A stretch of 64,000 nucleotides of DNA from Macrostomum lignano. Its lineage: Eukaryota. Shown here in pieces: positions 12,982-54,227 of this stretch. Position 1 is the first letter of the stretch. Each line of letters opens with the position of its first letter. The notes under the pieces were generated by a model. That model was not told the origin of the DNA. It did not search any database and worked only from the letters and a program-made list of their open reading frames with translations. The position numbers were made by a program, and so were the translations under genes. The DNA lies in NCBI GenBank assembly GCA_002269645.1, contig NIVC01002068.1:124001-188000 (forward strand). Direction: 5' to 3'.

Positions 12982-13122
12982 ATGTGAATGTGGATGTGAT
13001 GAGGTTTAAAACCCCGCTTTATCCAGCTTCATAAACCTAACGCTACTTATAGGATGTAGAAACAGTTCAACTTTTCTATCAGGGTGGTAACCCTCAAAAA
13101 AATTTTTATTTTATAGAAAAAA

Positions 13123-16100: not shown

Positions 16101-16942
16101 AAAGCAACCAACGACTTTGACAAGAACCTCTTTAAGTTAGCCAACAACTCTGTCTATGGCAAGACTCTTGAGAATGAGCGGAAAAGAACAAACCTGAAAC
16201 TTGTTACCTCATCAGAGCCTGCTGTTATTCAGGCAAATATGTCAAAGCCAACATTCAAAGAACTCCATATCTTTAATAGCTACTTAGGTGTGATCATATT
16301 TTACAAAACCAAGGTGACGCTGCGCAAGCCGATCTATACAGGTGTCACTGTACTCGACGAATCAAAACGTTGATGTACCAGTTCTTCTATGGCATGAAGC
16401 AGCAGTACAAGGATAAAATGAAACTCTTGTACACTGACACAGACAGTTTTATTATGGACATTCAAACAGAAGACATTTATCAGGACATGCTGCAGCAAAA
16501 AGATTTGTTTGACTTGTCTGAGTATGATGAATCTTGCAGGACACAGAATGGCGATCAAGTGTTTGACGCCACTAACAAGAAAGTGATTGGGAAAATGAAG
16601 GACGAGATTGCTGGTGACATAATCACTGAATTCATTGGGTTGAGAGCAAAGTCCTATTTTGTAAAATGTGAGTCGTCAGACCCAATTAAAAAATCAAAGG
16701 GAATTCCGAAACGTGTGGTTAGGAAGGAAATTAATGAAGCTGAATACAGAGACGCCTTGAATTGCAACAAAAAGACATCACGTGAGTTCTCAAAGCTACA
16801 ATCTAAAAACCATATTATTCACACAATTCAGCAAAAGAAGATTGGACTGTCAGGTGCAGATAACAAGAGATTCATTTTTGATGACAATATCAACAGTCTG
16901 CCGTTCGGGCACTGGAGATTAGGTTTAGGAGGTGGAGGTTAG
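13123..16942 (+). CDS. Protein-primed family B DNA polymerase (pPolB) with an OTU-like region and inserted endonuclease-VII-like Zn domain; three frameshifts (~14770, ~15112, ~16365)
   Basis: ExoI YADFEC; CHIC...RDHCHYTGKFRGAAHNTCN; HNAKNYD; RLKDSYQF; YLDANNLYGWAM; KLANNSVYGK; YTDTDS. Adjacent ORF pieces join by single-base shifts. Confidence 0.95.
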
Positions 16943-17052
16943 GTTCGGGCACTGGAGATTGGGTTCGGGCACTGGAGATTAGGTTTAGGAGGTGGAGTTT
17001 AGGTTTAGTTTTAAGAGAAAGTTTAATAAACCTCATAAAAAATGACATAAAA

Positions 17053-17460
17053 ATGACGACAAATAACTTTCTTGAAGATTTGGCTAACGAACTGGAAATC
17101 CCAAACTTTAGAGGAATATTTATGAGGGACACTCTGCCTGATTTTCCTCTAAGAAAGGAATGCGGCATCATGAACTTTGACACCACCGATAAGCCAGGAT
17201 CTCATTGGGTTTGCTGGGTGATTGATCCCGATCGCAAGCACAAGTGTTATTACTTCGATAGCTATGGGACGGCAGTACCAGAAGAGCTAAGAAATTATAT
17301 GAAGGGAAAAAATAATAAAAAAATTTACCACTCAGACTTTATTCTTCAAGGTCTTAGCAGTGATATTTGCGGTGAGCTGTGCATGACTGTTTTGTATGCA
17401 ATGACCAAAACACGAAAGACCTACAAGGAAATTATTCTTGGCTTTCCCGGTGTTTCATAA
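17053..17460 (+). CDS. Adenain-like cysteine (maturation) protease, 135 aa
   Basis: GSHWVC (His), YFDSYG (Asp), LQ...DICGELC (Gln/Cys) catalytic motifs. Confidence 0.92.
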   Translation: MTTNNFLEDLANELEIPNFRGIFMRDTLPDFPLRKECGIMNFDTTDKPGSHWVCWVIDPDRKHKCYYFDSYGTAVPEELRNYMKGKNNKKIYHSDFILQGLSSDICGELCMTVLYAMTKTRKTYKEIILGFPGVS

Positions 17461-17464
17461 AAGT

Positions 17465-18132
17465 TCATTGTACATTTCTCGTCGTCCTTCTTGCCGAATT
17501 TTTTGCCGAATTTCTTTCCGCATAATGTTGAAAAACTTTCTCGAGTTCATTTTTCAGCTGACTCATGTCATCAGTACCGACCATGTTCAAGTTCATTCGA
17601 ATTGATTGTTCATAAAGATCCTGAATGGTTTTGAACTCATCCTCTGAAATGAACTTATCATCGATTGCCCTTGAAATGTACCCTATGATTGAAGTGTGCA
17701 CCCCTTTCTCTTTTACTTGCTTCTCCTGTAGCTGCTTTAGTTTTTTTCGCCTGTTTCGCGCTACTGCTCCAGTAATTGCTGAAATAAGTCCACATGCAGC
17801 ACCCACAGAGCCGAGCGGGATTGCGATTGGGGCTGTGATGACTGGCAACACTGAGACAGCTGCAGCAGATCCAGATAGAACAGACACAGATCCTAGAATC
17901 ATATTGCTGTAGTCGAAAAATTTACAGTGGCTGTCATAGCGCTTAATTTTCTTTGTGTCGTGGAAAATATTTTTTTCAAGATCATCGCGCATTTTTTGAA
18001 TCTCCACCAGTCGAAACTGTTGAGAGTTACAAGTAATGACGGGGTAGAGTTTTTTTGCTCATATTGGGGTGCACTAGGTGCACTAGGTGTTGTGGGAGCA
18101 TTCTGATCATAAAGAGAATTTTGAGCATCCAT
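17465..18132 (-). CDS. Gasdermin-X-like membrane protein of adintoviruses; one-base frameshift in the T7 run at 18050-18056
   Basis: Corrected N-terminus ...SAPQYEQKKLYPVITCNSQQFRLVEIQK, a long Gly/Ala-rich hydrophobic hairpin, and ISRAIDDKFISEDEF; pattern recalled from Polinton accessory proteins. Confidence 0.65.
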
Positions 18133-18242
18133 TTTTTAAGAGAATTTTTTAAAAAAAATCGACAACTAGTTGGTGGTGTTAGATTTGTTTTACGTTTGAT
18201 TGCTTCGTCTGCAGTCACGGCAACGGGTCTCTTCGAATCTGC

Positions 18243-18989
18243 CTATTCATTGTCTGTGAGCTCCATTCTACGTCTGATCTCAAACAAGTCGGTTGGATCA
18301 CTTATTTCCCTTGTGCAGGTCTGTGGTGCCTCTTCAGCGTCAATGTTTTTGAGATTATGCAAGCGTTCAAGACGACTGATTCTTCTCAACGATTTCTGCC
18401 ATTCGGTAAAAATTAAATCTAAAAAGACTTTAATTGTATCAATTCTTACTTTGATTTGATCATGCAACGCTGTTGACTGAGTCATGAACTCTTCTAAATT
18501 CCTCACTTTACCTGTGTTGGTTGCGACGTTTTCTTTAATTCTATCATGCAATGCTGTTGACTGGTTCATGAACTCTTCTAAATTCCTCACTTTAACTGTG
18601 TTTGTGAAAACTCCTTCTTCAAGAATGCGCATCCGCCTATCAATGGAGTTTCTCAGAAGATTAATTGTCGATGCTAAATTTGTTCTTAAACCGTTGATTT
18701 GCGAGACTGCCGAAGTTATTTCTGACCTTAGTTCATTAGTTGCGTGTACAACCTGTACATAAAGCTTATCACTTTCAAACTTCTGCCTGGCTACTTTTAT
18801 GCGGAGATCTTCTATGTTTATCTGTAGCTGGTGCATGGAGCGCTCTAATTGTTTCAGTCTGTTTTTATTCAGTTTGATCTCTGGGATCTCTTCGTCGCTG
18901 TTGATATATCGCCTGTCAAGGATGGATATTTGAGCTGATGTAAGAGCGCTGTTGCCAGAAATGGATTCACCTGCAAAGTTTATTGACAT
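18243..18989 (-). CDS. 248-aa coiled-coil protein (possible fibre/spike) with an internal 28-aa (84-bp) tandem duplication
   Basis: Heptad-rich ORF; TNTVKVRNLEEFMNQSTALHDRIK / TNTGKVRNLEEFMTQSTALHDQIK. Confidence 0.7.
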   Translation of the reverse strand: MSINFAGESISGNSALTSAQISILDRRYINSDEEIPEIKLNKNRLKQLERSMHQLQINIEDLRIKVARQKFESDKLYVQVVHATNELRSEITSAVSQINGLRTNLASTINLLRNSIDRRMRILEEGVFTNTVKVRNLEEFMNQSTALHDRIKENVATNTGKVRNLEEFMTQSTALHDQIKVRIDTIKVFLDLIFTEWQKSLRRISRLERLHNLKNIDAEEAPQTCTREISDPTDLFEIRRRMELTDNE

Positions 18990-19005
18990 CTTTTAATAGC
19001 AAATT

Positions 19006-19806
19006 TTAAATTACAGTTCTTTTTTCTTTGCTGATAATCACAAACTGGTAAGGCTGATTCCACTTGTCATAGCAAAGATTAACGAATTCCTCTTGTGAAA
19101 TCTTTCTGCTTGAGTTTTTTGTTGGATTTATGAAATAGGCAGGCGCAATGACCTCATTGTAAAATCTTTTTAACCTGTCCTGTGGAATGGTTGGAAACAG
19201 GAGAATCAGATTGCAGTTCCCACGAATTGTTTTGTTCGGGAGCTCGAACCAGTTCTGTGCAATGTAAATTACATTACAATTGTTATGTCGTCCTCTTGTA
19301 AAATAGTTTTCTATCTGCTTCTGTGGGCCTGTCATACAATCATCAAAGACGATCAAATGCTTTCTCCCCTTTTCTAGCTCATCTGGTTGGGGTAGAAGTT
19401 TGGTCTTTGGATCAGCCTGTGGATCTCCATAGGTGAACACTTTAATGTTCTGCCATTTTTCATTGTCTTTGAGGTGCTTTGAATATTCAGCAGCTACAAT
19501 TTCTGGGTTACTGGGAAGGCTCATTTGGTTATTAAAACATGCAATAATGTCCTCTTTGTTCAGCTTGTTTTGAAACCCTGCAATCAACATTCTATACTCA
19601 TCTTGATACAGTGTGGGAGAGTAGATGTGCAGAGTGTCATAGTCGATAAAGCCAGGTCTAAGAAGCATGTTAAAGACTCTGAATGTTTTACCTGAACCTG
19701 ATGAACCAACAACAATGCATCTGAAGTGACTCGGAATTGACTCGTGATGAGAAAACTTAATCTGATTACGCGTCCAGTGAGGATTGAAGTCGTTTGAAAA
19801 GTCCAT
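19006..19806 (-). CDS. A32/FtsK-like genome packaging ATPase
   Basis: Walker A VGSSGSGKT, Walker B LIVFDDCM, FTRGRHNNCNVIYIAQ. Confidence 0.95.
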   Translation of the reverse strand: MDFSNDFNPHWTRNQIKFSHHESIPSHFRCIVVGSSGSGKTFRVFNMLLRPGFIDYDTLHIYSPTLYQDEYRMLIAGFQNKLNKEDIIACFNNQMSLPSNPEIVAAEYSKHLKDNEKWQNIKVFTYGDPQADPKTKLLPQPDELEKGRKHLIVFDDCMTGPQKQIENYFTRGRHNNCNVIYIAQNWFELPNKTIRGNCNLILLFPTIPQDRLKRFYNEVIAPAYFINPTKNSSRKISQEEFVNLCYDKWNQPYQFVIISKEKRTVI

Positions 19807-19825
19807 TTTTTCTATGACAAAAATT

Positions 19826-19990
19826 AAATAATAAGTCATTTAGATGTGTCATTTCGGGACTTGAATGTGTCGTTTTGGGACTTAGATGTGTCATTTTGGG
19901 ACTTGGATGTGTCATTTTGGGACTTAGATGTGTCATTTTGGAACTTAAATGTGTCATTTTGGGACTTAGATGTGTCATTTCGGGACTAGT
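19826..19990. repeat. 21-bp tandem repeat (AGATGTGTCATTTTGGGACTT) x~7-8; minus strand reads (MTHLSPK)n
   Basis: Read directly. Confidence 0.9.
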
Positions 19991-20012
19991 CTTGTACCCT
20001 CGGAAAGTACCT

Positions 20013-20402
20013 TTAGTCAAATTTGAAACCACTTCCTTTTTTAATGCTTGCTCTCATCTTCTCATAGACTGCAGGGTCCACACTGTCTGGGTTTGGGGCC
20101 AGCGGGGCCAGCGGGGCCAGTGGAGGTTGAATCTCTTGTTTAGGTGTTACAGTATCCTTTATCTTTTTGGCTGCTGTGGCTACACTGCCAGCCACTTCGG
20201 CAACGTTCTTGATGTTCTCTTTGTTCTCTCCAATGACCTTAAAAATCTTAGCCCCCTGAGCGATCAAATCAGCAAGGCCATTCCCAGAGCGTTCTTTTCT
20301 TGGATAGTGGCCTGCAGGGAAAAGTCCAGATCCGCGTTTAATGAGATTAAGTTCCTCTTTGTCATAGTATTTGTCAATGTCTTTTTCGAAAATAAGAGGC
20401 AT
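20013..20402 (-). CDS. 129-aa putative virion core protein with three GxG motifs (KRGSG, RSGNG, KKGSG)
   Basis: AAAAATG start at 20402; amphipathic segment GLADLIAQGAKIFKVI after a GxG site, as in protease-processed Polinton core proteins (inference). Confidence 0.65.
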   Translation of the reverse strand: MPLIFEKDIDKYYDKEELNLIKRGSGLFPAGHYPRKERSGNGLADLIAQGAKIFKVIGENKENIKNVAEVAGSVATAAKKIKDTVTPKQEIQPPLAPLAPLAPNPDSVDPAVYEKMRASIKKGSGFKFD

Positions 20403-20418
20403 TTTTACTTGAAATAAA

Positions 20419-21665
20419 TTATTTTTTGTTGAACCGCGAAAGCAGAAGCTCTCTCGCCCTCTTATCGATGTATTTTCTCTCAAGCATTTTGTCCAGGATG
20501 TTGACAAATTCTTTTCTATTTTCATCTTTCATTCCGGTCTTTGCCGCTCCTAGAAGAACCGCTACTCGCTTGTAGATTTCAGAAATTCCTTTTCCAGTTG
20601 AGGGCGGTTGGTCTTGGGGTTGTGGAGTTGGTTGGGCTTGTAGCTGCTGGGGAGGTGATGCAAAAGACTGCTCACTTTCAGAGATGGAACTGTCATGTGG
20701 TGCCTGTCTTTGTTGAGGTGTGAAAACTCTTTGATTGATTCTTTCATTCGATCTGGAGAGTGTTGTTCTAAGCGTTGCCAGTCTGTTGGGTTTTGTTTCT
20801 TATATTCAGCTACTTTCAAAGGGTCTAACTGCTCGAGTTGACTGAGTACTTGTTCTTCTGTGAAATGTTGCTGCTGTTGTGGCGGTCGTTGTTGTTGTTG
20901 TGGTTGCTGTTGCTGTTGTTCTAGATATTTCATCTGATCAATGACTTCCCCCTGATCTGGCAAACCAAACCATTGTTTAAAGTGCTTGTACTTTTTGAAT
21001 TTAGTCAGGTTGACACCGCCATTGTACATGTGTTTCAGAACTTCTGGGACCTTTAGTATTTCTATATCTCTAGCAAGAGAAAAAGTCACTAGATCTCTGT
21101 AGTTCTTTAGCTGCTTGTCCGAGATTCTCTCTTGGTTCTTGGTCATAAAAGTCAGTAAGGCGTCTGTGAAAGGAATTTTCATAGCTTCTGAGCCTTTGAC
21201 AACAGAAATATTTTCCTTATTTATGTCGATATAATATTCCACTGGTTCATTATAAATGTTTTTTCTCCACATACTTATTCCAAATACATATTTCCCATCA
21301 TGTTCGACACGCTCTACTGGTCCAAAAATGTTATCTGTCACTTTTAGTTGCTGTTGTGGTTGTGATTGTTGTGGTTGTGATTGTTGTGGTTGCGGTTGTA
21401 TCTGTCGTTGCGGTTGTATCTGTGGTGCTTCTGGAATTTTTCCCAAAGCCTTTTGCACCTGGGTTTCCTGTATGTCGTCGATAGTTTCTTTGACCTGATC
21501 AATATTTTTCTTAGCTTCTCCATACCCGGGTTTATGAAACTCTGTGGCTGCTTGGACAAACTCATTGTAGGATTGTTGCTCCTTATTTATTAGCCTGGTA
21601 ACTCTCTTTTCTGCCTGCGCCAGCTTTTCTAGTTCAGATATCTGCTGTGTACTTTTTCGCTTCAT
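20419..21665 (-). CDS. Conserved Polinton Gln-rich protein; frameshift in a 4-base run at 20723-20726
   Basis: Adding one T extends the ORF to TGKGISEIYKRVAVLLGAAKTGMKDENRKEFVNILDKML...RFNKK*, matching the recurrent Polinton GxG..RL.LL.G...G...E...IL..L motif. Confidence 0.7.
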
Positions 21666-21695
21666 TTCTTATTTTATTTTATTTTTAGTTAAAAA

Positions 21696-22991
21696 ATGAA
21701 CGACCCACTGACACCAGTTTTCTACAAAATTAACAAGCCTATTTTGAGTGATGATAGCACAATCAAAGCGACTCAGGTAAGAGTTCCCAGTCAGGAAAAT
21801 CAGAATGAAACTAATCTTGGTCCTGGCCAAACACTGACATTTACATACAATGGATGTTCGTCTTTGGTCAGTGTCCACAGTCTAAGGAGCGGCTTCTATA
21901 TGACGTTTCAATTCAAAACTAAAGGAGGCGCAGACGCCGCTCATGCTAATGATGATCTACACAATGCGGATGTCGCACTAACCAGTAATTTCTGGGCTTA
22001 TATGTTCAAAGAGTTTAATGTGTCCAATGGAAGTACAGAGTTGGAAAGAATAGCAAACTTTGGTGTGGTCTATGATACCCAGTGCTTGATTGAGAACCCG
22101 GATTTTATTCAGATGGGGAGCGGTGCTGGATTCATCCCCAATGAACAGACAGGAGATGAGAATGACCCTGGTTACAAAAAGAGAAAGGAGAGATACAACT
22201 ATGCTCTTGCTGGTGAGAACGATGCTGCTAAGAATCCGCTGTTTAGGTCTGTAGATATTTTTGTACCTTTGAGGTTTATGAGTGGTTTCTGTAATAGTTT
22301 CAATCGGTTGACAAGCAACTTTAGCTACACATTTAGACTGACTAGAGATGATCGGAACAGAGGAATTTGGTCGGGGGCCAATCATACATCGATGGAGATT
22401 AAGCTAACTGGTGTGGAGCTGTACTTAGAAATTATTGAGCCCAAGACTGCACTCAAAGCTGAATACTTGAAGGCGATTGAGAAAGACATTGATGTTGCTT
22501 ATACAGCTTATATGTGCAGAGATGAGCGGAATGACGCAAGACACAATATTTGCATTAAAGAAGGCTCCTGTAGCAATCCAAGGTACATTATTGTCACTAT
22601 GAGGAATACAACTAATGTAGGTAGATATCTACATGGAAACATTCGATCGATTCAACATGAGATCAGTGACAATTTATACCCTGCATTGCCACAAAATGGG
22701 AATTTCTCGGAGAACAAGATTAGTAAGTTTTACAATGAACTGTCGGACTTGGCTGTCAAAGAGAATAACGGTATTGTTTTGACAACCTTGCAGTATAAAA
22801 AACTATATCCAATATTTGGTGTTGATGTGACTGCTAGACAAATGCCTACAGACAATAGCCCTGTTAACATTGTGACTAATATCGAGCGGAAAGAATTTGG
22901 TGCCGCAACGGCTGTTGATCTGTTTATTATCTATGCATTTGAGAGGAAGATCAAGGTCAATATGATCAATAACTCGTCTAGTAAAGTTTGA
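21696..22991 (+). CDS. Double jelly-roll major capsid protein, 431 aa
   Basis: Size, position, N-terminal SDDSTIK, NPRYIIVTM and C-terminal YPIFGVDV...LFIIYAFERKI as in Polinton MCPs. Confidence 0.82.
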   Translation: MNDPLTPVFYKINKPILSDDSTIKATQVRVPSQENQNETNLGPGQTLTFTYNGCSSLVSVHSLRSGFYMTFQFKTKGGADAAHANDDLHNADVALTSNFWAYMFKEFNVSNGSTELERIANFGVVYDTQCLIENPDFIQMGSGAGFIPNEQTGDENDPGYKKRKERYNYALAGENDAAKNPLFRSVDIFVPLRFMSGFCNSFNRLTSNFSYTFRLTRDDRNRGIWSGANHTSMEIKLTGVELYLEIIEPKTALKAEYLKAIEKDIDVAYTAYMCRDERNDARHNICIKEGSCSNPRYIIVTMRNTTNVGRYLHGNIRSIQHEISDNLYPALPQNGNFSENKISKFYNELSDLAVKENNGIVLTTLQYKKLYPIFGVDVTARQMPTDNSPVNIVTNIERKEFGAATAVDLFIIYAFERKIKVNMINNSSSKV

Positions 22992-23013
22992 ATAATTTTT
23001 TTTCAATAAAAAA

Positions 23014-23871
23014 ATGGAAGCCATAGCCGAAAGACTGAACAACATTGTTTCACACTCTAAGGAGAGCATTCCAATCACTGTAGCGGGTCGCATTACTGAG
23101 TCAAACGGAATCTTCATTCAAAAATTGGAGCAACCACTTCGTTTGGATCCCGAGGCGAATTACCACGTCTATCTCAATGATTTCACTGGGTGGTCAAATG
23201 TTCCCAATGTGACAGCGGAAAATAACAAGTTTTATTACAAATGGAAGCGTACTACAACAGAGGTTGTGATATTTCCTGTCAGCACACAGAGCGTGGATAC
23301 TTATAATTACTTCTTGGAGAACGTCTTCACTAAACGAAAGCATTTTGAGATACCGGATGAAAGCAAACCAGAAAATAAACTGTTCCCTGTTAGATTAACT
23401 TATGATCTAACTGTCATGAGAGTTGTCTTGCAAGTTCATAAGGACGCAGAGGTAGAGTTTAAAGATGGCACTTGGTATCGCGAGTTGGGATTTGAAAAGA
23501 GAGTTTATGGTGGCGCCACAGACCAAAGCCCGCTGCAGGCGCCTGGCACTGTTGCTGTGTCCCGGCTAATATCCGGTATGTACTTGGCGCCAAATATCGC
23601 TGACATTGTCAAAGGTTTGAATATATTAATTCGCAGCAATCTGAGCCATGATTGGATATTCAAGGGCAAACGAAGCAACATACTTTTTAAAATTTCAAAC
23701 TCTGTTGCTGGTGGCAAAATGCTTGTGCAAAAGCCAAACCCCGTGAAAAGAGTGATTCTGAGTAATAGAGAGATACATGAAATCATTCTGCAGTTTGAAA
23801 CAGAGGATGGCGTTGGTGTCGATTTTAACGGGGAAGAGTTTGTGCTAACAATTATTATTGAGAGAATGTGA
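23014..23871 (+). CDS. Minor capsid protein (penton), 285 aa
   Basis: PLRLDPEANYHVYL...WSNVPNV..ENNKFYY and C-terminal IHEIILQFETEDGVGVDFNGEEFVLTIII. Confidence 0.82.
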   Translation: MEAIAERLNNIVSHSKESIPITVAGRITESNGIFIQKLEQPLRLDPEANYHVYLNDFTGWSNVPNVTAENNKFYYKWKRTTTEVVIFPVSTQSVDTYNYFLENVFTKRKHFEIPDESKPENKLFPVRLTYDLTVMRVVLQVHKDAEVEFKDGTWYRELGFEKRVYGGATDQSPLQAPGTVAVSRLISGMYLAPNIADIVKGLNILIRSNLSHDWIFKGKRSNILFKISNSVAGGKMLVQKPNPVKRVILSNREIHEIILQFETEDGVGVDFNGEEFVLTIIIERM

Positions 23872-23910
23872 GTCGTCTTCAGACTTGTAAAATTACGATA
23901 TAAGCCGCCA

Positions 23911-25567: not shown

Positions 25568-28480
25568 TGTAGTCTCAGTGACAAGTACTTAAATAATAAA
25601 TCAAGACACAACATCTTCCCCCTCTCTGAGAGGTTCACCAGCCGTAACGTTGCACCGGTCGCCACTGACGGTTCGAACGTCTCAGCGGTGGAGTCGCAGG
25701 TCCCGAGGCTGGTCCTAGTATTTGAACGTTGGTCTCTCCGCCGCATTGTGCAGGTTGTTGCCTTTGAATGTCCACGAGGGGGGGTCAAGCTCGTTTGGCC
25801 CTGGTGGCTCAGAATTCGGCCGCAAAGACGTTGGTACAAGCGCCTGCTGATTCCAGGTGCTGCCGTCCGTTAGTCTACACACGGTGTTCGTTCTCTTGAC
25901 GATCTGTAGTGGTCCAGAAAGCCGCGTCCCCAGCTTTCCCTTTCGAACTGGACGATGCACTCGAACCCAGTCACCGGCGCACAATGTTGGTGGTCGCACC
26001 CCCGCCGCCGGTCGGTATAAGCTGCCGTTCGCTGCTGTCTCTCCTAAATTCGCTGGGCGATATCTGGTTGTGCCGCCGTGGTGTCCTTAAACGGGCCAGT
26101 AGAGACAGTGCAGTGCGCCAACGTCTTCTTAGCATCAGCTCCGCTGGACTCTTGCCAGTCAGGGCGTGCGGCGTACTGCGGTAGGTCTCAAGGAATTGCA
26201 ACAGCGCGTCTTTCATTGGGACATTCTCTGCCCTGGCCGCTCGTATGCTGTCTACCAGAGTCCGGTTGAGCCTCTCCGTCTGGCCGTTCGTGCTCGGACG
26301 GTACGGGCTGGTCTTCTGATGCTGGATGCCGCGCTCCCGCAGGAACCCCGTGAGCGCATTGCCGAACTGCGGTCCGTTGTCCGTGAGCACCGTCTTGCAG
26401 AGACCCCAGCGAGCGAACAGGCTGCGTAACACTTTGCAGATCGTCTCGGTGGTGATGTTTGACGTTGCAAATACTTCCGGCCATTTACTATGCAGATCCG
26501 TAATGACCAAAAGGAATCGTGACGATGCTGGTGCTGCCTGTAGCTCACCCACGATGTCGATGGCGATCTGTGTCCACGGCCCATCTGGCCACCGCAGAGG
26601 CTGCAGAGGAGCCGGTCGCAATTTGAAATTCTTTTCTGCGGTCTCGCAGGCACTGCAGTTTCTGACAAACGTTTCGACGTCGAAGTCCATCTTTGGCCAC
26701 CAGGCAAACTCGCGGAGCTGCTGCTTAGTACGAACCACACCGGATGTCCGGCGTGCGCCGATTCCAGTAGGTTACGCCGCAGCTGATGTGAATGACTGCT
26801 CGCTCTTGGAAAGCCAGGCAATGTGCCATCCTGCCAAACGCTGAGGTGCTCTCTGACTTTGAAGAACGGGTGCAACTCTGTATCCTTCGTTGAGCCCCAG
26901 TTGCCGCTAGTCACTCGCTTAATCACCTCGCGCAGAACCGTGTCCTCGGCCGTTGCTGTCGCTAGCTGGGTAGGTGTTACTACTCGGACTCGAGGCATCG
27001 CAGTGTCCGGTAGCTGTACGATATTCATGTCCGACCCACAGCTCCACATTGACAACATGTCGGCCACGAAGTTCCGATTGCCTGGCGGATATTTACGTGG
27101 AAATCGTACTGTTGAAATCTGTCACACCAGCCATGGATGCGCAGCGGCCGATGTCCCGTGCCGCTGGGTCCCAACAGTAGTTGACGTACCGCTTGATGGT
27201 CTGTTCGCAGCTCAAAGTGACGCCCATATAGGTAGTAGTGCCACTTCTCCATGGCCCACAGACTGGCCAATGCCTCCTGCTCATTTGCAGCGTATCGCTT
27301 CTCGGTGTCGGTCAAGGCTCGGGCGGCAAAGGCGATTGGACGCTCGACGCCGTCTTGGATCTGGGACAGGTTTGCACCGAGAGACTCCGCACTGGCGTCG
27401 CTGGTGACAATCGTCTCGGCCTCTGGGTCAAAGTGCGCCAGGATTGGTGGATTACAGATTGCTGCTTTTAGCTCTTGGAACGCTCTTTCGCAGTCCGTCG
27501 ACCACTCGAACTCCGCATCCCCCTTCAGTAGGGCCCTCAGAGGCGCTGTGACTTCAGCAAATTTGGGCACAAAGCGCATCAGGTAGTTTGCAGATCCTAG
27601 GAACGCCTGCAGCTCCAATTCCGGTTAGACGGTGAGCGCAACTGGCTGAATGCCTTGGTCTGGGACTCTGAAGGTCGCATACCGTCGGCTGAGAAGATGA
27701 GGCCAAAAAATTCTACCTCCGTCTTGCGTAGCAGGCATTTGTCCTTATTGGCCGTTAGGCCAGCGTCGTTCATACGCCCTAATAGCGCTCGCAGTCTTGA
27801 ATCATGTTCAGTCATGTTTGCTCCGAAAACAAAAAAATCGTCCAGAATATGTTCGACCCCATGAAGTCCGGCTACTAAGTCGTCCAACATCCTTTGGAAG
27901 GCTGCTGGCGCTGACGCTAAGCCGAAAGGCACTCTGCAATACCGATACAACCCCAGGTGCGTGATGAATGCTGTCAAGTCACGCGATGCCTCATCCAACT
28001 GCATGTAGCCAGCTTTGAGATCGATCTTTGAAAATACGCGGCCACTTTCTGCCTTGATCTTTGCCGAAATCTCGTCCAGCTGAGGCATCGGATGTCGATC
28101 GATTACAAGCGACTTATTCAGCTCTCGCACGTCGATGCAGATTCGAATGTTGCGTCTTTCTTGTTTGCGACAACCATGTTGGATATCCATGGGCTGGAGT
28201 TTATTCGTTCAATGCGGTCAAGTTCTCCATGCGGTCAAGTTCATTGCCTATTTTCTGTTGCTTTGCGAGGGGAAGGCGGCGCAGCGGCTGCTGCACTGGT
28301 AGCACAGCTGCATTTACTCTCGGCTTGTGCACCGCCCCTTTGCAGAGTCCGATTAGACCACTGAAAACCGCTGGGAACTCCTCCGCTATGTCTACACTGG
28401 CGATACTATTCTCAACCTCCGGAGGCTGCAGTTGTACCCGGAATCCATGATGCTGGGCCTGACTGCCTGCGTCCGGTTTC
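25568..28480 (-). mobile_element. Degenerate Ty3/Gypsy LTR retrotransposon pol (RT-RNaseH-integrase-GPY/F), 5'-truncated, with PPT and a short 3' LTR-like end
   Basis: RT (IRICID, FSKIDLKAGY, RVPFGLASAPAAFQ, ILDDFFVFG); RNase H (TSDASAESLGA, AFAARAL, TDHQ); integrase (QIAIDIVG, TDNGPQF, NGQTERLNRTL); KLGTRLSGP. Polypurine tract 25614-25628 directly precedes TGTTGTGTC. Several frameshifts. Confidence 0.92.
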
Positions 28481-28910: not shown

Positions 28911-29456
28911 GGACATTTCCAACAGTTTGGGAACATGTCTAACAGTTTGGGAACATGTCCAACAGTTTGGGAACATGTCTAACAGTTTGGGAACATGTCC
29001 AACAGTTTGGGAACATGTCTAACAGTTTGGGAACATGTCCAACAGTTTGGGAACATGTCCAACAGTTTAGGAACATGTCCAACAGTTTGGGAACATGTCC
29101 AACAGTTTGGGAACATGTCCAACAGTTTGGGAACATGCCCAACAGTTTGGGAACATGTCCAACAGTTTGGGAACATGTCCAACAGTTTGGGAACATGTCC
29201 AACAATTTGGGAACATGTCTAACAGTTTGGGAACATGTCCAACAGTTTGGGAACATGTCCAACAGTTTGGGAACATGTCCAACAGTTTGGGAACATGCCC
29301 AACAGTTTGGGAACATGCCCAACAGTTTGGGAACACGCCCAACAGTTTGGGAACATGTCCAACAGTTTGGGAACATGTCCAACAGTTTAGGAACATGTCC
29401 AACAGTTTGGGAACATGTCCAACAGTTTGGGAACATGTCCAACAGTTTGGGAACTG
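28911..29456. repeat. 20-bp minisatellite (AACAGTTTGGGAACATGTCC) x~27; resumes at ~29843-29920
   Basis: Read directly. Confidence 0.97.
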
Positions 29457-29843: not shown

Positions 29844-30843
29844 ATTTGGGAACATGTCCAACAGTTTGGGACATGTCTAACAGTTCAGGAACATGTACAT
29901 CAGTTGGGGAACATGTCCATAAAAACTAATAAAAGGTGTCGGACAGGGCAAAAGCATGCAGATAAAGAAACACTTCGTTGCATGCATGACAAACCAGCAG
30001 TTTCTCAGGAACTGGTGATTGTTTTAGGTTAATGTTTGATTTTTGGTAAAAGAAAGTATAAGCCAGTTAATCAAAGTAGATTAACTTTTTCAGCAAAAAA
30101 TATCGTATTAAGGCAGTCTCTTTGACTTTGTATTAATTTGAACAAATAATGGAAACACAGATAAAACAGGACAGATCGGGTGCCAGCAGTGATCAAATAA
30201 TCGCAAATCAGAGAGAATTCTTGAACTATCAAGAATACATCGCTTAGTTTGTACTGTTAACAAAAAGACAAATTTATAAAAAAATTATCCAGTAACAGTT
30301 TAAAGTTAAAAATGCGATAAAAATCGTGCAAGATTAAATTTTTTATTAGACTGTCTGTTGAGTTGATTGCTAGTTACAGAATGTTGCTTCAACAATCTCT
30401 AAAATAAGGTAAGGCTAAAAAAACACAACGGTTGCAGTGATGTCACTTGATAATTTTAAGAGCTTGGTACAGAAAAGGGCTGAAAAATATCTGGGATTTT
30501 TTTCTGTGCTAAAGAGTCCAATAAGCAGTAAAATATGAGCACGAGTGGTAAATAAAGGAGATTAGAGTTTGAGTAAATAGAGGTAAAAAAATTAGCAACT
30601 CCGACAGAAATTGAATTTAAGTGGCAAGCGGATAGGTGAAGGTCAAGTAATTTCTCATTAAATCGGTATTTAATTCAATATCTGCCATCTTCATTCGCAT
30701 ACTGTGTCTGCCTTGATGGATTGCAAATTTTCGAATGAAGTTATAATGACAGCTTGACCAACTTAACCAGAGTGCAATCAATAAGGCAAGGCGCACGGTC
30801 AGGTAAGCTTCAAGACAGCGAGTCACATCAAGGAAATTCAGCA

Positions 30844-30968
30844 TCAGATATCTGGCTGCTGGCTGTCGCACTGCGCCTTGTAGCGCAGCAGGCACTGCGC
30901 CAGGAACTCGATCGGGTCCACGGGCCTCGCGTTCGCTACCTCGGCCATTGAGCTGGCCAGTGCTGGCT
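30844..30968 (-). CDS. Dpy-30/DYDC-like dimerisation-motif exon, predicted terminal exon of NWD copy 2
   Basis: ttcttcattccag|AG CCA... Phase-1 joining to the donor CTG A|GTGAG at 31526 gives [48 protein letters not shown]. Confidence 0.78.
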
Positions 30969-33900
30969 CTGGAATGAAGAAATGGGGGGAATTTTGTAGT
31001 GCTCAACGAGTTCCGTAGGGTAAGGAATCTAAAGACACCACTATAGAAAGGACTCTGAAGACACCACACTCTGAGAAGGATCTGAATACACCACTCTCGG
31101 GGAAGGACCCTGAAGACACCGCTCTCTCAGGAGGCTGAAGACACCGCTTTCTGAGCAGGACTCTGAAGACAATACTCTGAGAGAAGGAACCGGAAGAAAT
31201 CATTGTGGGAAGGACTTTGAGGACACCAATTTGGGAAGGGAGGACTCTGAACACAGCACTGTGGAAATGACTTTGAGGACACCAATGTGGGAAGGACCTG
31301 AAGATACCAATTCTCTGAGAAGGACCCTGAAGACACCACTGTGGGAAGGAATCTGAAGGCACAATTTTGAGGATTCTGAAAAATCCCACTGGGATGAAAT
31401 AAGATCAGTAACTTCCCTCAGCGAAGAATCCCAACTTCAATTAAGCCTTCCGGAATACATCTAGGGCAATAACGCCTATTAACTACCACGTATTAAGTTG
31501 TAATCAACAACCCCTTGAATCTCACTCAGCATGTCCAGGTATTCCGGTCTTGGACCAGGTGCTCTCGCCGGCGAACCGACACTCGAGTCTGTATTCGCCT
31601 TTTCATCAATCGCCTTCATCGAGTGCATCTGGGCAGCTCCATCAGCAGCAACTAGCGGTTGCGGGTCGTGAAGCTCAAACAGCATGATTGGTGCGTTATG
31701 CGTCAGCACCAGCAGGTCCCGACCATCTTCCCCAACCAAGCAGAGTCCGAAAGGATCCGACTCAAACAGGTAGTTTGCAACGCGGCGTCCATCACTGATT
31801 ACATAGACCTGGAGTGCAGAAATTAAACGCAGTCATTGAGAAAAGGCATCTTTAGATCGGATTCTTATAAGCGTAAGCATTAAAAGATTTGCCATTCCCA
31901 ATAACAATCGTTGCTAATCTCACCTGCAAGCCTCGAGGCGGAACAATTGCGAACATGTCCGAATTGTTCATGGATTCGTCATCGAATACGGCGAACTCCA
32001 CCTCGTAGGCGGGAAAGTACACCTGGCCAACAAGCAGGCTGCAGTCTGGCGTGGCCTGCAGTCTAACAAAGTACAAGTCCTCGTCCTGGCTGAGACAGCG
32101 GATCACTTCGCCTTTCATGTAGTCCACAATTTGAAGCTTGTAGTTGACCAGGTGCTGGTTGTCGTGGAGGAAGGCCACTGCGGGTCCCATGTCGAACACT
32201 TTGCCGATGGAGTGCTGGAACTGCATCTCGCTGGTCGGAGTTCCTTTCTCCACGTCGCTGTAGTCGAGGCGCACAACCGCGCCGAGCCAAATCGGAGGAA
32301 CTCCGACGCCGACGCGAATCTCCTCGGACGCTTTGAGGTGTTGGCTGAAGGCCAGGTTGAGCGTGCACTTCTCTGGCAGGAACTGAATGTCGACAAGGTC
32401 ATTGCGATTATTCAATCGCTTTTTTAGAAACTTTTCTTCCTTCGCTTTCTTAGCCGCTTCCGTCAGCTCTTCTTCATCGCCTTTGGTTTCGGTTGAATTC
32501 TCTTCCCTGGTCTCCTGGTTTTCGGAAGGCTCCTTCGTCTCTTCCTTCTTGTCTTTCTTCCTCTTTTGCTTTTTACTGCCTTTCTTCTTAGATGTCGCCT
32601 TTAGACCGCCATAAATGACCTCTGAAAACTCTGAGAGCCTGTCTAGCTGAATCCACGCTGTGCAAACTCTCTTTGAAGCTGTACTGAACGTGGCACTTAA
32701 GTGAAATTAAGCACTGTCGAGATTCATCAAGAAATCCTAATTCTAGAGAATTTGATCCATGCGAAATCGGAGTCTGGGCGAAGATGTTGTTCTTTGAGAT
32801 ACGCAGTGAAGCCTGTAGTTCCATTTCTTTGTCACTCGATTCGTTTTCTGCGTCGACGTGAAATTTGAACTCGACCCCTCCAACTGATTTGGACTTACGA
32901 CTTTGAAGGAGTTCCTCCTTTGATGTGCTACCAAAAACTTTTTCTACCAGCTGGTTGCTGATCACTGAGATGCCAACAGAAAAAGGAGCTTTCGGATCGC
33001 GGCGAAGCTCAATAATGGGAGGTTTATCCGACAGCCTGAGCGTCTCTACCTGATCGTCTTCTTTCGAGTCGCGTGAAGAGGACTTCTTAACCACCAGTGT
33101 CCGAGTGTTCAATGAAATCAGAGCCTCATTAGTGCGAATGTCAACCGTGTGACAATCGGTGAGCGCTGTCGCATTCTTACACGGCTTGAACTGAGTATAC
33201 ATTGGAAGCAGTGCATCCTCTTCGCTGTGGTGACTAAGCTTGTCGGTGAAGTGTTTCAAATTGTACACCTTAGTCATGATGAACATTCGCTCGTCAGAGT
33301 CGCCAGCAGACTCGTCAGGAAAATGGCAGATAGTGAAGAAGTCCGTGCCTTTCGGCTGGCCACAAAGAAAGCTTTCGGCCGTTCCCAGGGAGATTCCTTC
33401 CAAAAGTTCGCCAGTTTGCACGGACCACACAAGTAGAAGCACCTTAGAACCAGACGTAACTAGCAGTCGCTCGTCTTCGGTAAATTTAGCCTGCGTTCCG
33501 TCACCAAAACTTGATGCAGCCTTTTTGAACTTGTCTTGCTCAGGTGATATTGTCATCCCAACAGCGCGCTTTTCGTCACAGTCATACAACAGACCGCGAA
33601 GAACGCTTGTTTGACCGTATAATCTGGACTTTCTCTTCAGAAGGAAAGTCATTCGACGACGACTTGGGCTTACGAAATTCTGACTGTACTTTATATCGAA
33701 GCTTTCCTGAAGGTCCACAATACAAATGGGCTTGAGGCTGTCAGAGATGGCGAATGTAACGAAAAAAGTACTGTCTTGCTTCCCACTGCCTTCTTCAGCA
33801 GATTTTGTTGCGTTTACAATAGCAACGATGTTTCCCTCATGATCAATGAGACAGGAGCTAGCAGAAACTTCTTCAGCTTGCTGAAGTAACTCGATGGTCT

Positions 33901-36900
33901 TCGATTTCAAGTCGGCTTCACTCGCTGCCGGACTTTCGTCCGCTTTTGTCTTCTCGTCATTTTCATCCGGTGTCTTTTCTTCTTTCTTATTGTCAGGTTG
34001 CTTTAGTGGTGAGTGGCGCCACATGGACTCAAGTTCCGCTTTGTCAGCTGACTTGAAGATGTCAGGCAAAGAACCTCGAACGATCTCTTTCGTGTTTAAG
34101 TTCATGAACACGAGCAATGTTGAGTGGTTGCTGCCTGCCTCGATCCCAAAGCACAGCAAGTTGTTTTTGCTATCGAGGTTTTGGGTGCCGATTCTTGACG
34201 TTCCGCTTGTATTTTCTTCATAAAGCGCAACAAACTTCTTCTCTCCGAGTGACAGCAGTCTAAGAGTGCTTGTTCCCGTTGAGTCACTCTTTCCCTTGCA
34301 ACAAAGCACATAGTCCTTTGTCACATATTCTACGTCATCAGATGACACACTCCATGATGGGTCCAGAGTCATCAGTTTCGTCACCCTGCCGTTCATGAAG
34401 TCGACTCGAACGAGATCTTGCGACTTCTGCGCCTCTTCCTCTCCAGATATCATCTTCTTCATCATCCCGTCTACGTCCAGCTTCTCCATGATGCTGTCTG
34501 GAATCTCTCCAGCGTTGAGCGATTCCATCATGTCTCGCAGCTCTTGCGGCACATCCTTGTTGCACGCTTCGTATTCTTCGATCTCCTCTTGGATCTTCTT
34601 CCGACCCATGTTAAGGACAAGCGCCTGCATGTCGTCCTCGGTGACACCGGCATTCTTCGAGCGCATCGATAGCACGTGCATTACGCAGTCGCCTGGGATG
34701 TATCCAGTCGACATGTACTTCATGCTGAGGAACAGGTTGTAGTCGGAGCTGAACCGTTTGATCTCATTTCCCTCGATGTCGTACCAGGTGACTTCGTTGT
34801 TGATGAGTGAGAAGGACACCAGCTGACCGTTGGGCATGACCAGTCCCATTCCGAGTCCGAGATCAAAGCTGGAGTAGAGAACTCCAGACCCGGAGTCGAA
34901 GCACTGCACCTTCGGGATGAGGCAGCAGTTGCTGAGAGCCTGTTTCGACTGGCGACACTGGTTGAGCAGCAGCTTCACTCGAGGACAGTCCTTCTCGTAC
35001 ATGATGAGCCGACCGATGAGATCAACGCTCAGATTGACAGGGTCGTATACGAGACTCTGAGCGGAGAGTCGGATTGCATTGTACACGAGCTCGGCCTCTT
35101 TGATGTACTCGACACCGAGCTTCTGCGGGAGGTCGAGGTCTCTCAGCAGCAGGTACCGAGACGTGCCCTTCAGCTTGTTGAACATGAAGTCGTAGTCAAA
35201 CACAATGTAGTCGTAGAACTCGTTCACTCGACCGGACTTGATGAGGTGCCACGGCAGCTCGTTCAGCTTTCGCAGGTTGTACTGAGCAGTGCCGTCCTCA
35301 TCTTTGCGGAGCACGAATGGCTGCTCGGGAACGGCTCGGTCCTCCATTGAGAACTCGGGCAGGTTCTGGAGTGAGAACGAATGCATGAACGGCTCAGTAA
35401 GTCGGTTCAGAGAACAGATCAATTTCAGTGCTCATCACTTACGAGCTTCTTGCGCAGATAGGCTGGGTACACGAACTTCTTTCTCCTGCCGCTCCACAGA
35501 CCCAAGAAGTAGTCTGCCATGATAGAGTGAATGTCCCGTCTGGTCTTTTCGTCCGACAAGAAGTACTCCTGAGCCACCTCGATGAACTGTCGGTGGTACC
35601 AGAACACTACCCGGATGTTGTCCGCCTCTCTCTCGACCAGGTAAGAGCCAATGTCGTGACGCAGTCGAGCCCAGCAGATCGGCGGGATGCGGATGAAGGG
35701 CGGCAGGTGATGCTGAAACACGTCAATGAGGACGGCGTCATCCAGACTGAGCAGATCCTCCAGCTCCGACTCTGACAGTCCGTTTCTCGATGCAGTGATA
35801 AATGCCAGGGCGTGAGAGGTCTGGAAAAACAAATGAGCAGAGAGAGTCATTCTGACTAGAATAATCCAATCACTGTAGATAAGTGGATAGTTGTGGAATA
35901 TTCTCACTAGCCTGGGCTACAGTAACTAACACGAACGAAATACTTACAAAAAGCCTGCCGTGCTTCAACTCGAGTTTCTCGAACAGCTGAAATATTGCCT
36001 GACGAACGGTGTAGCGCAGAGACGACTCATCTACCTGTTGGTAAGAGCGCCATCTCAGAACCTCGTGGTACAGCAGGTGAACATAGATTGGCAGTGAGCA
36101 CTTGGAGAATGCCTGCTCGACCAGAGCCCATTGCTGCTCGTTCAGAGTGCGACCTTGTTCGCTGAGCAGAGCCGACAAAATGCTGGTGCACAGACTGGTC
36201 TCCAGTGGCGTCACCTCCACGTAGATGTCTGGGTTAGGCAGCTTCCCTTTGAATGTCTTCAGCAAATCGAACATGTTGGGCAGAGTGGACACAACCATCT
36301 TCACGTTGGCAGGCAATGGCGTCCGCACCCACGTCAGATGGTAGGCACCGTCAGAGCTGTCCAGCTGATCAACACTGTCAAGGAACACCAAGATTCTCCT
36401 GAACTGGCCCATGCGTTCGAGCATGGAGTAGAAGGTGTTCAAGATCTCCTTGAAGTCGTCGAGTGACTCGCACTTTTCCTGGTCGTCCTCGTTGCCGAAC
36501 ACAGCGAGCTGACGGCACAGATACTTGAGTGTCTGTCGAATGCTCGACGTACCGGGACTGGTGCCGAGGAATCGCAACAGCACGATGGCATCTTTGGAAT
36601 CGGACTCTGGCAACCAGCTTCGCACCAGACTGGCGGCCTTGCCAAGTAGAGAGGTCTTGCCGCTGCCCGAGTCGCCGTACACCACCAGAGGCTCCGTTGT
36701 GTTGCTCGCTTGCACATAAGCTTTCACCTTGTCGATGATCTCTTGCCGACCCTGGAACTTCTTCACGTAGTTGACGCATGCAGTCGAGTGCTGCAGCACC
36801 TCCGAGTAGAGGTCGTCCGATCGGAGCCGCATGCTCTCCCGCACGGATTCGGCCACGAGGCGCTTCACATTATCGCAGTAGTCGCTGCCAAACTTTTCCA

Positions 36901-38120
36901 GATAGTCTTTGTGGCTACTCATGCCCACACCCTCAGCGTCATTGGTCCATTTTAGTGAGTAAGTGAAGGAATTGGATCCCGCCATTCGAGTCAGAACGTG
37001 TCTGTTCAACTCCTTGACCATCGCGTTCACAGCTTCATCAAGAACCTTTACTGCCTCGCCATCTTCGTTCAAAGAGTCGGTCAGGTCGATGAACTTGAAC
37101 ATCTTTCCTCGAGAGAAGTCGCGCTGAGACTCCAGATCAGAGAATTCTCTCACGAATGCGAGAGCCTGAGCCAACTTTTGCGGAGGTTTTGACAATATTC
37201 CGCTGATCACCTCCATCTCGGTGACAGACGCCGTGAACTTCTTCATTGTCGCGTGCGAGATCAAAGTCTTTTGAAGACACAACTCGGCACCTCTCTTCAT
37301 GAGTCCGATGATGGAGTCTTGGACAGCTTCCCACCGCTGTCGAGCAGCTTTCAAGAGCTCCTTGTCCGCCTGGAACAATGAATTACGAGATTAGAGGTTA
37401 TTAAATTTATCCTTTTGCAAACTCTGAAAAACAAGCGCTGCATTAATCGTTAAAAATCACACTTACCGCCTCTGCTAGAGTTGCAATCGGTCTCAGCACG
37501 CAGATTGGTGGCTTGTTGTTCTCATCGATCGTGTACCACTCGTGTAGACACGAGACGTCGCGTCCGTCCTCCTTCAACGCTTCCACGATGTTGTTGAAAA
37601 CGTCGACCTCGACAAGGGCTGCAGGCGGCTGGTTGCCATAGCGCTGACCCAGCAGACAGATGAAGTAGGGGCCGGCTGACATGATGAGCGAGTTGTCGAT
37701 CTCTTGGTAGCACATGTACGGACCCTGGTGGTCGAGCTGTACCTCGTCACCGACTCCCCATCGCATGTCGATGGTTTGAAACTCGAGTCCGAAGGAGTCG
37801 CGGCAGAACTTTTTCAGCCTTGGATTGACGTGCTGCATGAGGTAGTTGCGCTCCGTTCCCATGTCCGAGAAGGTGGACGACAGGAAGATGCGCACGACGC
37901 GGCTGTTCATGATCGGCAGGTCGTCCAGACGGCCTTTCATGACTTTTAGGTAGACTGCTAATGGGTCAAACTCGGTGAGCGCTCCTATCATTTCCGAGTG
38001 TTTGGTCAGCCGTTTGTGCAGCGCAGGCCGCTTGGCTGACCGCACTGGCCGCGAGTGGCGGCTGTGAGCTGAGCCGATCCGTTCGGCCCCTCCCACATCG
38101 GAGGGCTCTCGTGAATTCAT
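30844..38120 (-). CDS. NWD-type STAND protein, copy 2; exon 4 frameshifted at ~32620-32670 as assembled (pseudogene or assembly error)
   Basis: Near-identical to copy 1 at an offset of ~30.08 kb with the same splice sites; ATG at 38120; the exon 4 ORF stops at 32588 and resumes in another frame. Confidence 0.82.
31020..31375. repeat. Degenerate ~21-26-bp tandem repeat (GAAGACACCACTCTGAGAAGGACCCT-like) in the last intron of NWD copy 2
   Basis: Read directly. Confidence 0.75.
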
Positions 38121-51568: not shown

Positions 51569-52152
51569 ATCAAAAAAGAAAGCAAGCAAAAACAAGATCA
51601 AGAGGCTGGGCGATCAAACCGGACGGTCTCCAGGGATCCATAGTGGCGGGATGCGCTGACACGATGCATACATCTTCTCTGACGGCCAGCCGCCCCGTCC
51701 CCACCCCCATCTTCCCCCAGTCTTGTGCTCCCGGAAACCTTCAGATCGGGAGGCAGGGGGAAGGCAGGGCCTGTGGAACTCTCAGAAGTCATTACCGGCG
51801 CTCTGCGTGGGGCGCCCGGCGCCGTGATAAATCTGATTGCTCTGGGGGAAGAGGCTGCGGGGGCGGTGCAGTTGAGAAGGAGGAACAAGCACTGGAGGGC
51901 CAATACATTCTTGGCTCAAATTTCAACTTGTTTCCTGCGAGAATGGCAAACGAAAAAACTTGTCAGCATGAGCTTGAAGAGCCACCTGCAGAACAGAGGC
52001 CTTTGCTGCCCATCTACTCCTGTTCCAGAGAAACCCAGCTGAGAGCATGACTAACGAAGTTCTGGCTACTGACTCGCATCATATAGAGAATTCACGACAT
52101 AAACTGGTGCAGATTAGACACGGTTTTTCTGAGCTTCTCACAGGGTTGGGAA

Positions 52153-54227
<2,075 letters not shown>

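Follow-up and report, generated by a model that had tools for sequence, protein, structure and literature searches.

A conserved C-terminal Dpy-30 domain encoded mostly by the last exon of an NWD-family STAND NTPase gene of Macrostomum lignano

Analysis of a 64,000-nucleotide stretch of the Macrostomum lignano genome (contig NIVC01002068.1, positions 124,001 to 188,000 of the forward strand; hereafter the window) led to a minus-strand gene for a STAND NTPase of the NWD1/NWD2 family, whose true last coding exon is located at 30844-30968. This exon carries most of a Dpy-30 domain, and we conclude with high confidence that the gene product is a STAND protein of the NWD family bearing a conserved Dpy-30 domain at its C-terminus. 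The M. lignano origin of the window is reflected in the spliced gene model, which is 95-98% identical to M. lignano proteins of UniProt and GenBank.

The terminal exon and the Dpy-30 tail

Two tandem copies of one NWD gene are present on the minus strand, copy 1 at approximately 1494-8038 and copy 2 at 30844-38120, with 97-98% identity between them; copy 2 is the only one whose Dpy-30 exon is within the window. Reading the sequence and its GT-AG sites resolved copy 2 into six coding exons (38120-37467, 37369-35948, 35820-35443, 35365-31924, 31808-31526 and 30968-30844). The first in-frame ATG, at 38120, is the putative start, and the protein of about 2,100 residues ends in ...SQQPDI. The penultimate exon (31526-31808) encodes the last beta-strand region, a linker and the first Dpy-30 residues (...PRPEYLDML); its final bases are GAA TAC CTG GAC ATG CTG A, the last of them at 31526, after which comes GTGAGA with the donor GT at 31525-31524. 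The last intron (30969-31525) is a phase-1 GT...AG intron of 557 nt ending with cattccag at 30969, and the last exon begins with AG CCA GCA at 30968 and closes with the stop TGA at 30846-30844. The codon split by the 31526/30968 junction is A/AG (Lys), and the other two reading frames across it are full of stops. Only one instance of the terminal exon is present in the window, and 100 shuffles gave 0 matches. A first-pass annotation made from the sequence alone had proposed the in-phase splice of an exon missed by the open reading frame (ORF) track (A/GTGAG...ttccag/AG), as well as conservation of the same donor in copy 1. The sequence and its translation bear out the phase-1 junction, and the identical donor was read in copy 1 (...GACATGCTGA followed by GTGAG, last exon base 1494). 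The copy 2 intron also holds a 26-bp tandem array (approximately 12.6 copies) at 31022-31362. Against 557 nt in the window, the intron measures approximately 390 nt in GenBank contig L001, which is syntenic, and approximately 1.4 kb in contig L003; part of the difference between the window and L001 falls in the array, inside which the alignment breaks.

Concerning the identity of the tail, Pfam matched the spliced sequence with the Dpy-30 family (PF05186) at 34.4 bits (E = 1.8e-8, profile positions 9-41 of 42), the gathering cut-off being 22 bits. The best phmmer match in PDB was human DPY30 (3g36, E = 4.9e-6), followed by DYDC1 and DYDC2, and the DPY30 alignment begins at PRPEYLD in the upstream exon. 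A profile of ten flatworm tails presented the highest similarity with human DYDC2 (8j07_c3, E = 6.6e-12), ahead of DPY30; it also matched DYDC1 (E = 5.6e-9), Chlamydomonas RSP2, and AK7 and NME5 (E = 3e-4 to 2e-3). Additionally, an exhaustive search of 1.8 billion representatives showed that the tail end of a longer profile retrieves small Dpy-30 proteins, as confirmed by Pfam. The AlphaFold2 model of the last 61 residues (mean predicted local distance difference test score, pLDDT, 83.9) consists of helices 15-34 and 39-57 joined at the R-P-x-D-P turn. When this model was compared with PDB by Foldseek, the top 34 matches were all chains from entries containing Dpy-30-domain proteins, namely DPY30 complexes and axoneme, radial-spoke or central-pair structures (best match 8j07_c4). 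The best matches had a root-mean-square deviation (rmsd) of 1.1-1.6 Å and a probability of up to 1.00, and their E-values were weak (at least 0.09), a consequence of the small size of the domain. From Macrostomum to Schistosoma, all ten tails keep Y, V, R and D-P. Pfam scores for Dpy-30 range from 34 to 50 bits in five M. lignano lineages and reach 27 bits in S. turkestanicum and 23 in Fasciolopsis, while in the tails of Cichlidogyrus, S. haematobium, Calicophoron and Paragonimus Dpy-30 is the top Pfam match but remains below the cut-off. The Pfam, phmmer, tail-profile and AlphaFold2/Foldseek results are in agreement, and they uphold the earlier suggestion of a Dpy-30 domain with a resemblance to the DYDC type.

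Several observations argue that the exon and the NACHT gene form one transcript. The identical junction is found in UniProt A0A1I8HEY0 (P0001, 98% identical) and in the GenBank models BOX15_Mlig021732g1 (P0003) and BOX15_Mlig023669g3 (P0121). The annotation that supplied these GenBank models rests on transcripts assembled from RNA-seq, in which TransDecoder called the ORFs (PMC5730564). The contig harboring BOX15_Mlig021732g1 (L001) is syntenic with the copy 2 locus on both flanks. The Dpy-30 domain straddles the junction, as the upstream exon, in a continuous open frame with the NWD body, supplies its conserved Y-L-(D/E) start; the terminal exon alone, which has a single Met, would yield a peptide of 34 residues lacking the beginning of helix 1. 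A phase-1 intron lies exactly 13 residues ahead of the invariant R-P in each of the three genes compared, and the codons it splits are A/AG in the window gene, C/GT in the 43%-identical paralog BOX15_Mlig013297g3 and A/CT in the S. haematobium ortholog. The fusion is also present in M. lignano paralogs that are just 42-43% identical (P0005, P0006, P0008, P0009 and BOX15_Mlig012608), in trematode orthologs (Schistosoma, Paragonimus, Fasciolopsis and Calicophoron) and in the monogenean Cichlidogyrus, and the tail is contiguous with the NWD body in the database models of Fasciolopsis, Calicophoron, Paragonimus and Cichlidogyrus. Fusion and phase-1 intron are thus kept across Macrostomorpha and Trematoda, and the tail also in Monogenea, which indicates that the fusion arose once, early in the phylum; one ancient fusion, inherited together with its intron, is the simple explanation.

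It is extremely unlikely that the Dpy-30 exon belongs to a different transcript, for instance that of a small Dpy-30 gene further downstream, joined by a gene-model artefact or within a spliced-leader trans-spliced polycistronic precursor: although precursors holding several genes make up approximately 7% of the assembled M. lignano transcripts (PMC5730564), and the database model P0002 splices the terminal exon in the wrong frame, so that models are not uniformly reliable, this origin is opposed by the incomplete helix 1 of the 34-residue peptide, by the Y-L-D start upstream in the frame of the NWD body, by the repetition of fusion and intron in a 43%-identical paralog and in Schistosoma, and by the contiguous tails of the four neodermatan models. 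A chance ORF or a separate gene was also considered and rejected, given the straddling domain, the shared intron and the recurring fusion.

Another NWD paralog that likewise ends in a Dpy-30 tail (...VLSEGFAMVADARPDDPIDFLASWLRDYGQK) was seen at 1530-3458 on the minus strand of L002 (GenBank NIVC01003854.1), located on the opposite strand and a few kb upstream of BOX15_Mlig013297g3. The presence of this second tailed paralog beside BOX15_Mlig013297g3 indicates that the NWD family is expanded, and partly clustered, in M. lignano.

The protein body and its two kinds of C-terminus

Pfam analysis of the spliced protein led to DUF4062 (PF13271, E = 1.3e-9), NACHT (PF05729, E = 3.1e-10), AAA_16 (E = 7.5e-12), nSTAND1 and HTH_NWD1 (PF25469, E = 3.1e-8), the Walker A motif of NACHT being GDSGSGKTS. 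The domain order is DUF4062 (TeTIR/NIR), NACHT, NWD1-type winged helix, approximately 1,100 residues of diverged WD40-like repeats and a Dpy-30 domain of 45 residues. Specifically, the first coding exon of copy 2 (37467-38120) encodes the N-terminal part of the DUF4062/TeTIR TIR-like domain. The second (35948-37369) encodes its C-terminal part, containing the SVTEMEV motif, together with the NACHT NTPase. The third (35443-35820) harbors the NWD1-type winged helix-turn-helix, and the large fourth exon (31924-35365) the helical region after it and then the degenerate WD40-like region, with the frame broken near 32650.

The closest relatives outside the flatworms are NWD2-like and NWD1 proteins, with approximately 27-38% identity over the N-terminal 38-48% of the query; the best of these matches are the NWD2-like proteins of Lineus, Tubulanus, Owenia, Tachypleus and insects (35-38% identity over the N-terminal 44-48%). 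DUF4062, NACHT and HTH_NWD1 are common to both NWD1/2 and the window protein, and the last propeller blades can be aligned. The differences are that the WD40 region of the window protein is too diverged for Pfam, which detected no WD40 family in the 1,174 residues of the C-terminal region, and that Dpy-30 stands in place of the S-x-x-C-a-a-X box described below. For the C-terminal 1,100 residues or so, clear relatives were found in flatworms only (Macrostomum, Schistosoma, Paragonimus, Calicophoron, Fasciolopsis, Schistocephalus, Protopolystoma and Cichlidogyrus). This distribution was taken from the exhaustive representative search, as a profile of the last 330 residues returned P0121 only from a word-indexed protein collection. 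Hundreds of true WD40 proteins match the flatworm profile at two places, positions 24-63 and 372-415. By hhalign, the flatworm C-terminal profile reached a 57% probability (E = 1.1e-4) with an NWD1/2 alignment, over the last blades only, versus 3.7% with a single NWD2 sequence, and the last NWD2 blades aligned immediately upstream of the flatworm linker and tail. When the last 330 residues were modeled with AlphaFold2, the result contained beta strands at low confidence (pLDDT 43) and was too poor for a fold search. Homology of the degenerate repeat region with WD40 is therefore rated as probable rather than demonstrated. The first-pass annotation had named the protein an NWD (DUF4062-NACHT-WD40) protein; the family name is borne out by DUF4062, NACHT and HTH_NWD1, and the WD40 part of it holds only partly, for degenerate repeats outside the reach of Pfam.

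In three preprints of 2026, DUF4062, under the new name TeTIR or NIR, was shown to be a TIR-like NADase fold and to sit in the effector position of TEP1, NWD1, NWD2 and NPHP3, with strong NADase activity reported for human TEP1 and little or none in vitro for full-length human NWD1 and NWD2. The N-terminal domain of the window protein, encoded by the first two exons, aligns with the TEP1 TeTIR structure (PDB 11gz, E = 9.3e-11). The residues essential in TEP1 (F902, R914, R942 of the RWG loop, C959, R976 and E1008) are all identical in it, the TEP1 numbering offset being inferred from the 11gz alignment, and the motifs conserved at the catalytic positions are IFLSSTF...ER, MRWG, YMCYQE, GQRYG and SVTEMEV. 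The likeness with TEP1 covers an aligned TeTIR/NIR domain with its NADase-essential residues kept; the window protein differs in its repeat region and has no TROVE/vWA region, while TEP1 has no Dpy-30. The Dpy-30 domain had previously been suggested to be an effector of the STAND protein, which is probably wrong: the effector position is held by the N-terminal TIR-like domain and the tail is therefore unlikely to be the effector. The tail is more plausibly an anchoring or dimerizing appendage at the far end of the protein.

The distribution of the two kinds of C-terminus was studied in the 86 best homologs, 23 from flatworms and 63 from other phyla. The Dpy-30 core was found in 16 of the 23 flatworm homologs and in 0/63 of the others. 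Conversely, a conserved S-x-x-C-a-a-X end (Cys at -4) was present in 20 of the 63 non-flatworm homologs and in none of the 23, for instance ...SRACVVS, ...SHACVLL and ...SQVCLLV, with the tetrapeptides CVVS, CLIS, CVLL, CHIV and CLLV. Its carriers are vertebrate NWD1, nemertean, annelid and chelicerate (horseshoe crab) NWD2-like proteins, amphioxus and rotifers. This box is a feature noticed in the present analysis and has no published family definition. In its sequence it looks like a prenylation signal, and no literature was found on prenylation of NWD1/2. When the C-terminal part of mouse Nwd1 carries a tag at its N-terminus, this fragment alone is reported to reach the endoplasmic reticulum (ER; PMC11897295), a localization that a prenylation-like box would fit. 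In the hhalign comparison, the last shared blade directly precedes both tails, the Dpy-30 domain and the box. The last exon is missed or mis-framed in the models P0013 (S. mansoni Smp_145280), P0019 (Heterobilharzia) and P0016 (S. japonicum), as well as in P0002 and P0007 of M. lignano; in these five models the tail is hidden by intron read-through after ...YFEESGL or by a wrong-frame splice, and all five could be amended.

Proposed function of the tail and integrity of the gene copies

Dpy-30/RIIa domains elsewhere dimerize and clamp an amphipathic helix of a partner, as in DPY30-ASH2L and in RSP2, NME5, AK7 and DYDC of the radial spokes. Following this pattern, the flatworm tail would form the usual homodimer, which would dock onto the amphipathic helix of a partner and would keep the dimeric NWD protein in one place in the cell. 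The tail would thereby have assumed the role of the prenylation-like S-x-x-C-a-a-X box at the C-terminus of many NWD1/2 proteins in other animals. From the anchored site, the diverged WD40-like repeats, as the presumed sensor, would detect a ligand, and oligomerization driven by NACHT would then bring the N-terminal TIR-like domains together. We give the docking and anchor-swap mechanism, which is drawn by analogy, an even chance of being correct, and for the explanation as a whole (fused gene, docking and anchor replacement) our confidence is somewhat better than even. A broader proposal is that C-terminal anchoring is a core, overlooked part of NWD-family function: it would be provided by a prenylated CaaX in most animals, explaining the mouse Nwd1 fragment at the ER, and would have been replaced in early flatworms by a DYDC-like Dpy-30 dimer, through which the TIR-like NADase sensor, already dimeric, would be plugged onto an amphipathic-helix scaffold of an AKAP-like kind that may be axonemal. 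This last proposal is doubtful and is offered only tentatively.

Several points weigh against the explanation of a fused gene with a docking tail. The junction is supported indirectly, by database gene models and by comparison between genes and species. Dimerization and helix docking are suggested by family membership only, and the CaaX-like box is a sequence pattern that may or may not act as an anchor. NADase activity of the flatworm domain is not assured, considering that human NWD1/2 are weak or inactive in vitro. Several neodermatan tails score under the Pfam cut-off, and the domain may be decaying there. The tail is absent from 7 of the 23 flatworm models, at least two of which visibly read into the intron (P0013 and P0019), the others being fragments or unresolved. 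Finally, both window copies are blemished. Copy 1 has an altered 5' end, with no ATG at the copy 2 position and an indel, and copy 2 has a 1-nt deletion relative to copy 1 near 32650, causing in this assembly a frameshift and an in-frame stop at 32590-32588. These blemishes may be recent or may be assembly errors.

Among the alternatives, the tail could act within the molecule or oligomer, the Dpy-30 dimer binding an amphipathic helix of its own protein (e.g., in the Glu/Lys-rich inserts) and serving auto-inhibition or the bridging of two STAND rings. The protein does contain long, charged and probably helical inserts (helix 17-29 in the low-confidence model of the last 330 residues), and STAND proteins are commonly auto-inhibited by their C-terminal regions (an APAF-1 analogy from a 2026 preprint). 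However, the inserts show little conservation among paralogs or between the window copies, whereas the tail is conserved, and no helix with a Dpy-30-binding signature was identified in the window protein. We consider such an intramolecular role unlikely.

Equally unlikely is a specific link of the STAND protein, through its tail, to chromatin or COMPASS-type partners (by an ASH2L-like SDI motif) or to AKAP-like scaffolds of the ciliary radial spoke or central pair (RSPH3-type). Such a link would give the protein a distinctly nuclear or distinctly ciliary role, in line with what the first-pass annotation had suggested. M. lignano is a ciliated animal, and the tail profile is closest to DYDC2 and DYDC1 and also matches RSP2, AK7 and NME5, all of them axonemal and docked via their Dpy-30 domains. 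Nevertheless, forty residues cannot discriminate between partners, with DPY30 scoring nearly as well, and mammalian NWD1 was reported at the ER and not in cilia (PMC11897295). In addition, the literature yielded no expression, localization or interaction data: none of the gene identifiers Mlig021732, Mlig013297, Mlig012608, Mlig023669 and Smp_145280 was found in any paper open to searching or in the supplementary files of two transcriptome studies of M. lignano.

A last alternative, in which the tail is a relic in decay that no longer serves a function and window copy 2 is a pseudogene, is very unlikely. The frameshift and stop in the large exon of copy 2 and the parasite tails below the Pfam cut-off would fit a relic. 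On the other hand, the residues invariant from Macrostomum to Schistosoma (Y, V, R and D-P in the ten tails) and the high-scoring tails kept by at least five M. lignano gene lineages speak for retention, and a one-base indel in a single assembly may be a sequencing error. The stretch concerned (32588-32650, minus strand) presents several indels between the copies, including a lysine-rich insert, and three database models handle it in three ways. The Dpy-30 exon of copy 2 is intact, with a single residue change (Y to C) relative to the GenBank alleles, and the large exon of copy 1 is likewise intact, in one open frame at 1820-5344. Over approximately 1,950 codons, the ratio of nonsynonymous to synonymous differences (pN/pS) between copy 1 and copy 2 is 0.25, and therefore both copies have been under constraint.

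The last exon of copy 1 lies outside the window, past its first base, the penultimate exon of this copy being at 1776-1494 on the minus strand. Similarity to copy 2 stops at 1318 and collinearity with the GenBank contig NIVC01002707.1 (L003) stops at 1082. The remaining 1-1082 (minus strand), situated in the last intron of copy 1, has no counterpart in the first 12 kb of NIVC01002707.1. It is probably a transposon insertion, which would have pushed the Dpy-30 exon of copy 1 out of the window. By eye, spliced-looking pieces resembling a THAP zinc finger were recognized in this segment (...FPCSSNYNSEAVRTRTFAFPRDPQERERWRKALPNI...). In NIVC01002707.1 itself, the copy-1-type donor is spliced to a Dpy-30 exon approximately 1.4 kb downstream (BOX15_Mlig023669g3, P0121). 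The possibility that copy 1 lacks a Dpy-30 exon altogether was rejected, as this copy-1-type transcript model carries it.

Concerning the rest of the window, a Maverick/Polinton-like virus-like element is located between the NWD copies at 10700-23900, with ORFs for an rve integrase (11488-12483, plus strand), a protein-primed family-B DNA polymerase (15096-16373, plus strand), an A32-like packaging ATPase (19006-19839, minus strand) and a double-jelly-roll capsid-like protein (21696-22991, plus strand). Overlapping ORFs at 25971-28190 (minus strand) were recognized by eye as the pol of a long terminal repeat retrotransposon, with reverse transcriptase, RNase H and integrase motifs and the frame in several pieces. 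A 20-bp tandem array (27 copies, 95% matches) at 28913-29454 and 29845-29919 gives rise to long artefactual ORFs on both strands; GenBank contigs L001 and L003 carry the array downstream of the gene as well. Two regions of extreme composition, 52000-54000 (GC 0.27, GC skew 0.86) and 62000-64000 (GC 0.65, GC skew 0.64, AT skew 0.67), are probably simple-sequence repeats.

Comparison with known Dpy-30 proteins and meaning for the NWD family

Among Dpy-30 sequences, the flatworm tail profile comes nearest to DYDC1 and DYDC2 of the axonemal radial spokes, the match being limited to the Dpy-30 part. Both are proteins of approximately 175 residues with an N-terminal Dpy-30 domain and no NTPase, whereas the domain of the window protein is C-terminal in approximately 2,100 residues. 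The small size, the N-terminal position of Dpy-30 and the DYDC-specific C-terminal region that mark the DYDC1/2 group are all missing from the window protein. DPY30, the COMPASS/MLL subunit that binds the SDI helix of ASH2L, resembles the tail over YLD...PIEFLA...LL..KAQ (3g36), with an rmsd of 1.1-1.2 Å to the 4riq chains. It differs in being a free-standing protein of approximately 100 residues, and, in comparison with it, the window tail lacks one residue of helix 1 where the splice falls. AK7 and NME5 share the design principle of a catalytic protein with a C-terminal Dpy-30 domain plugging into a scaffold; as axonemal adenylate and nucleoside-diphosphate kinases, their catalytic domains are unrelated.

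The architecture was initially flagged as potentially undescribed. No paper describing a fusion of Dpy-30 and NACHT was found in our literature search, and the three preprints on DUF4062/TeTIR/NIR mention neither Dpy-30, nor flatworms, nor prenylation; however, NACHT together with PF05186 and the exact junction already exists in the UniProt and GenBank models of M. lignano. The fusion, which among the homologs seen is confined to flatworms, is thus present in databases and apparently undescribed, and should be counted among the lineage-specific variants of an already known family; it does not represent a novel type of system.

As STAND proteins, NWD1 and NWD2 are conserved in animals, and little is known of their biology. 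The interest of the flatworm tail lies in its conservation throughout a phylum and in its seeming substitution for a CaaX-like box; it is also timely, as in 2026 the DUF4062 of NWD1/2 was tied to the TIR-like NADase fold, the kind of effector used by bacterial and plant immune receptors. Two experimental handles are offered, namely the binding partner of the flatworm tail and lipidation of the CaaX cysteine of mammalian NWD1/2. M. lignano is amenable to RNA interference and transgenesis. For the family as a whole, the phylum-wide exchange of C-termini points to localization or dimerization of the C-terminus as a conserved requirement of NWD proteins.

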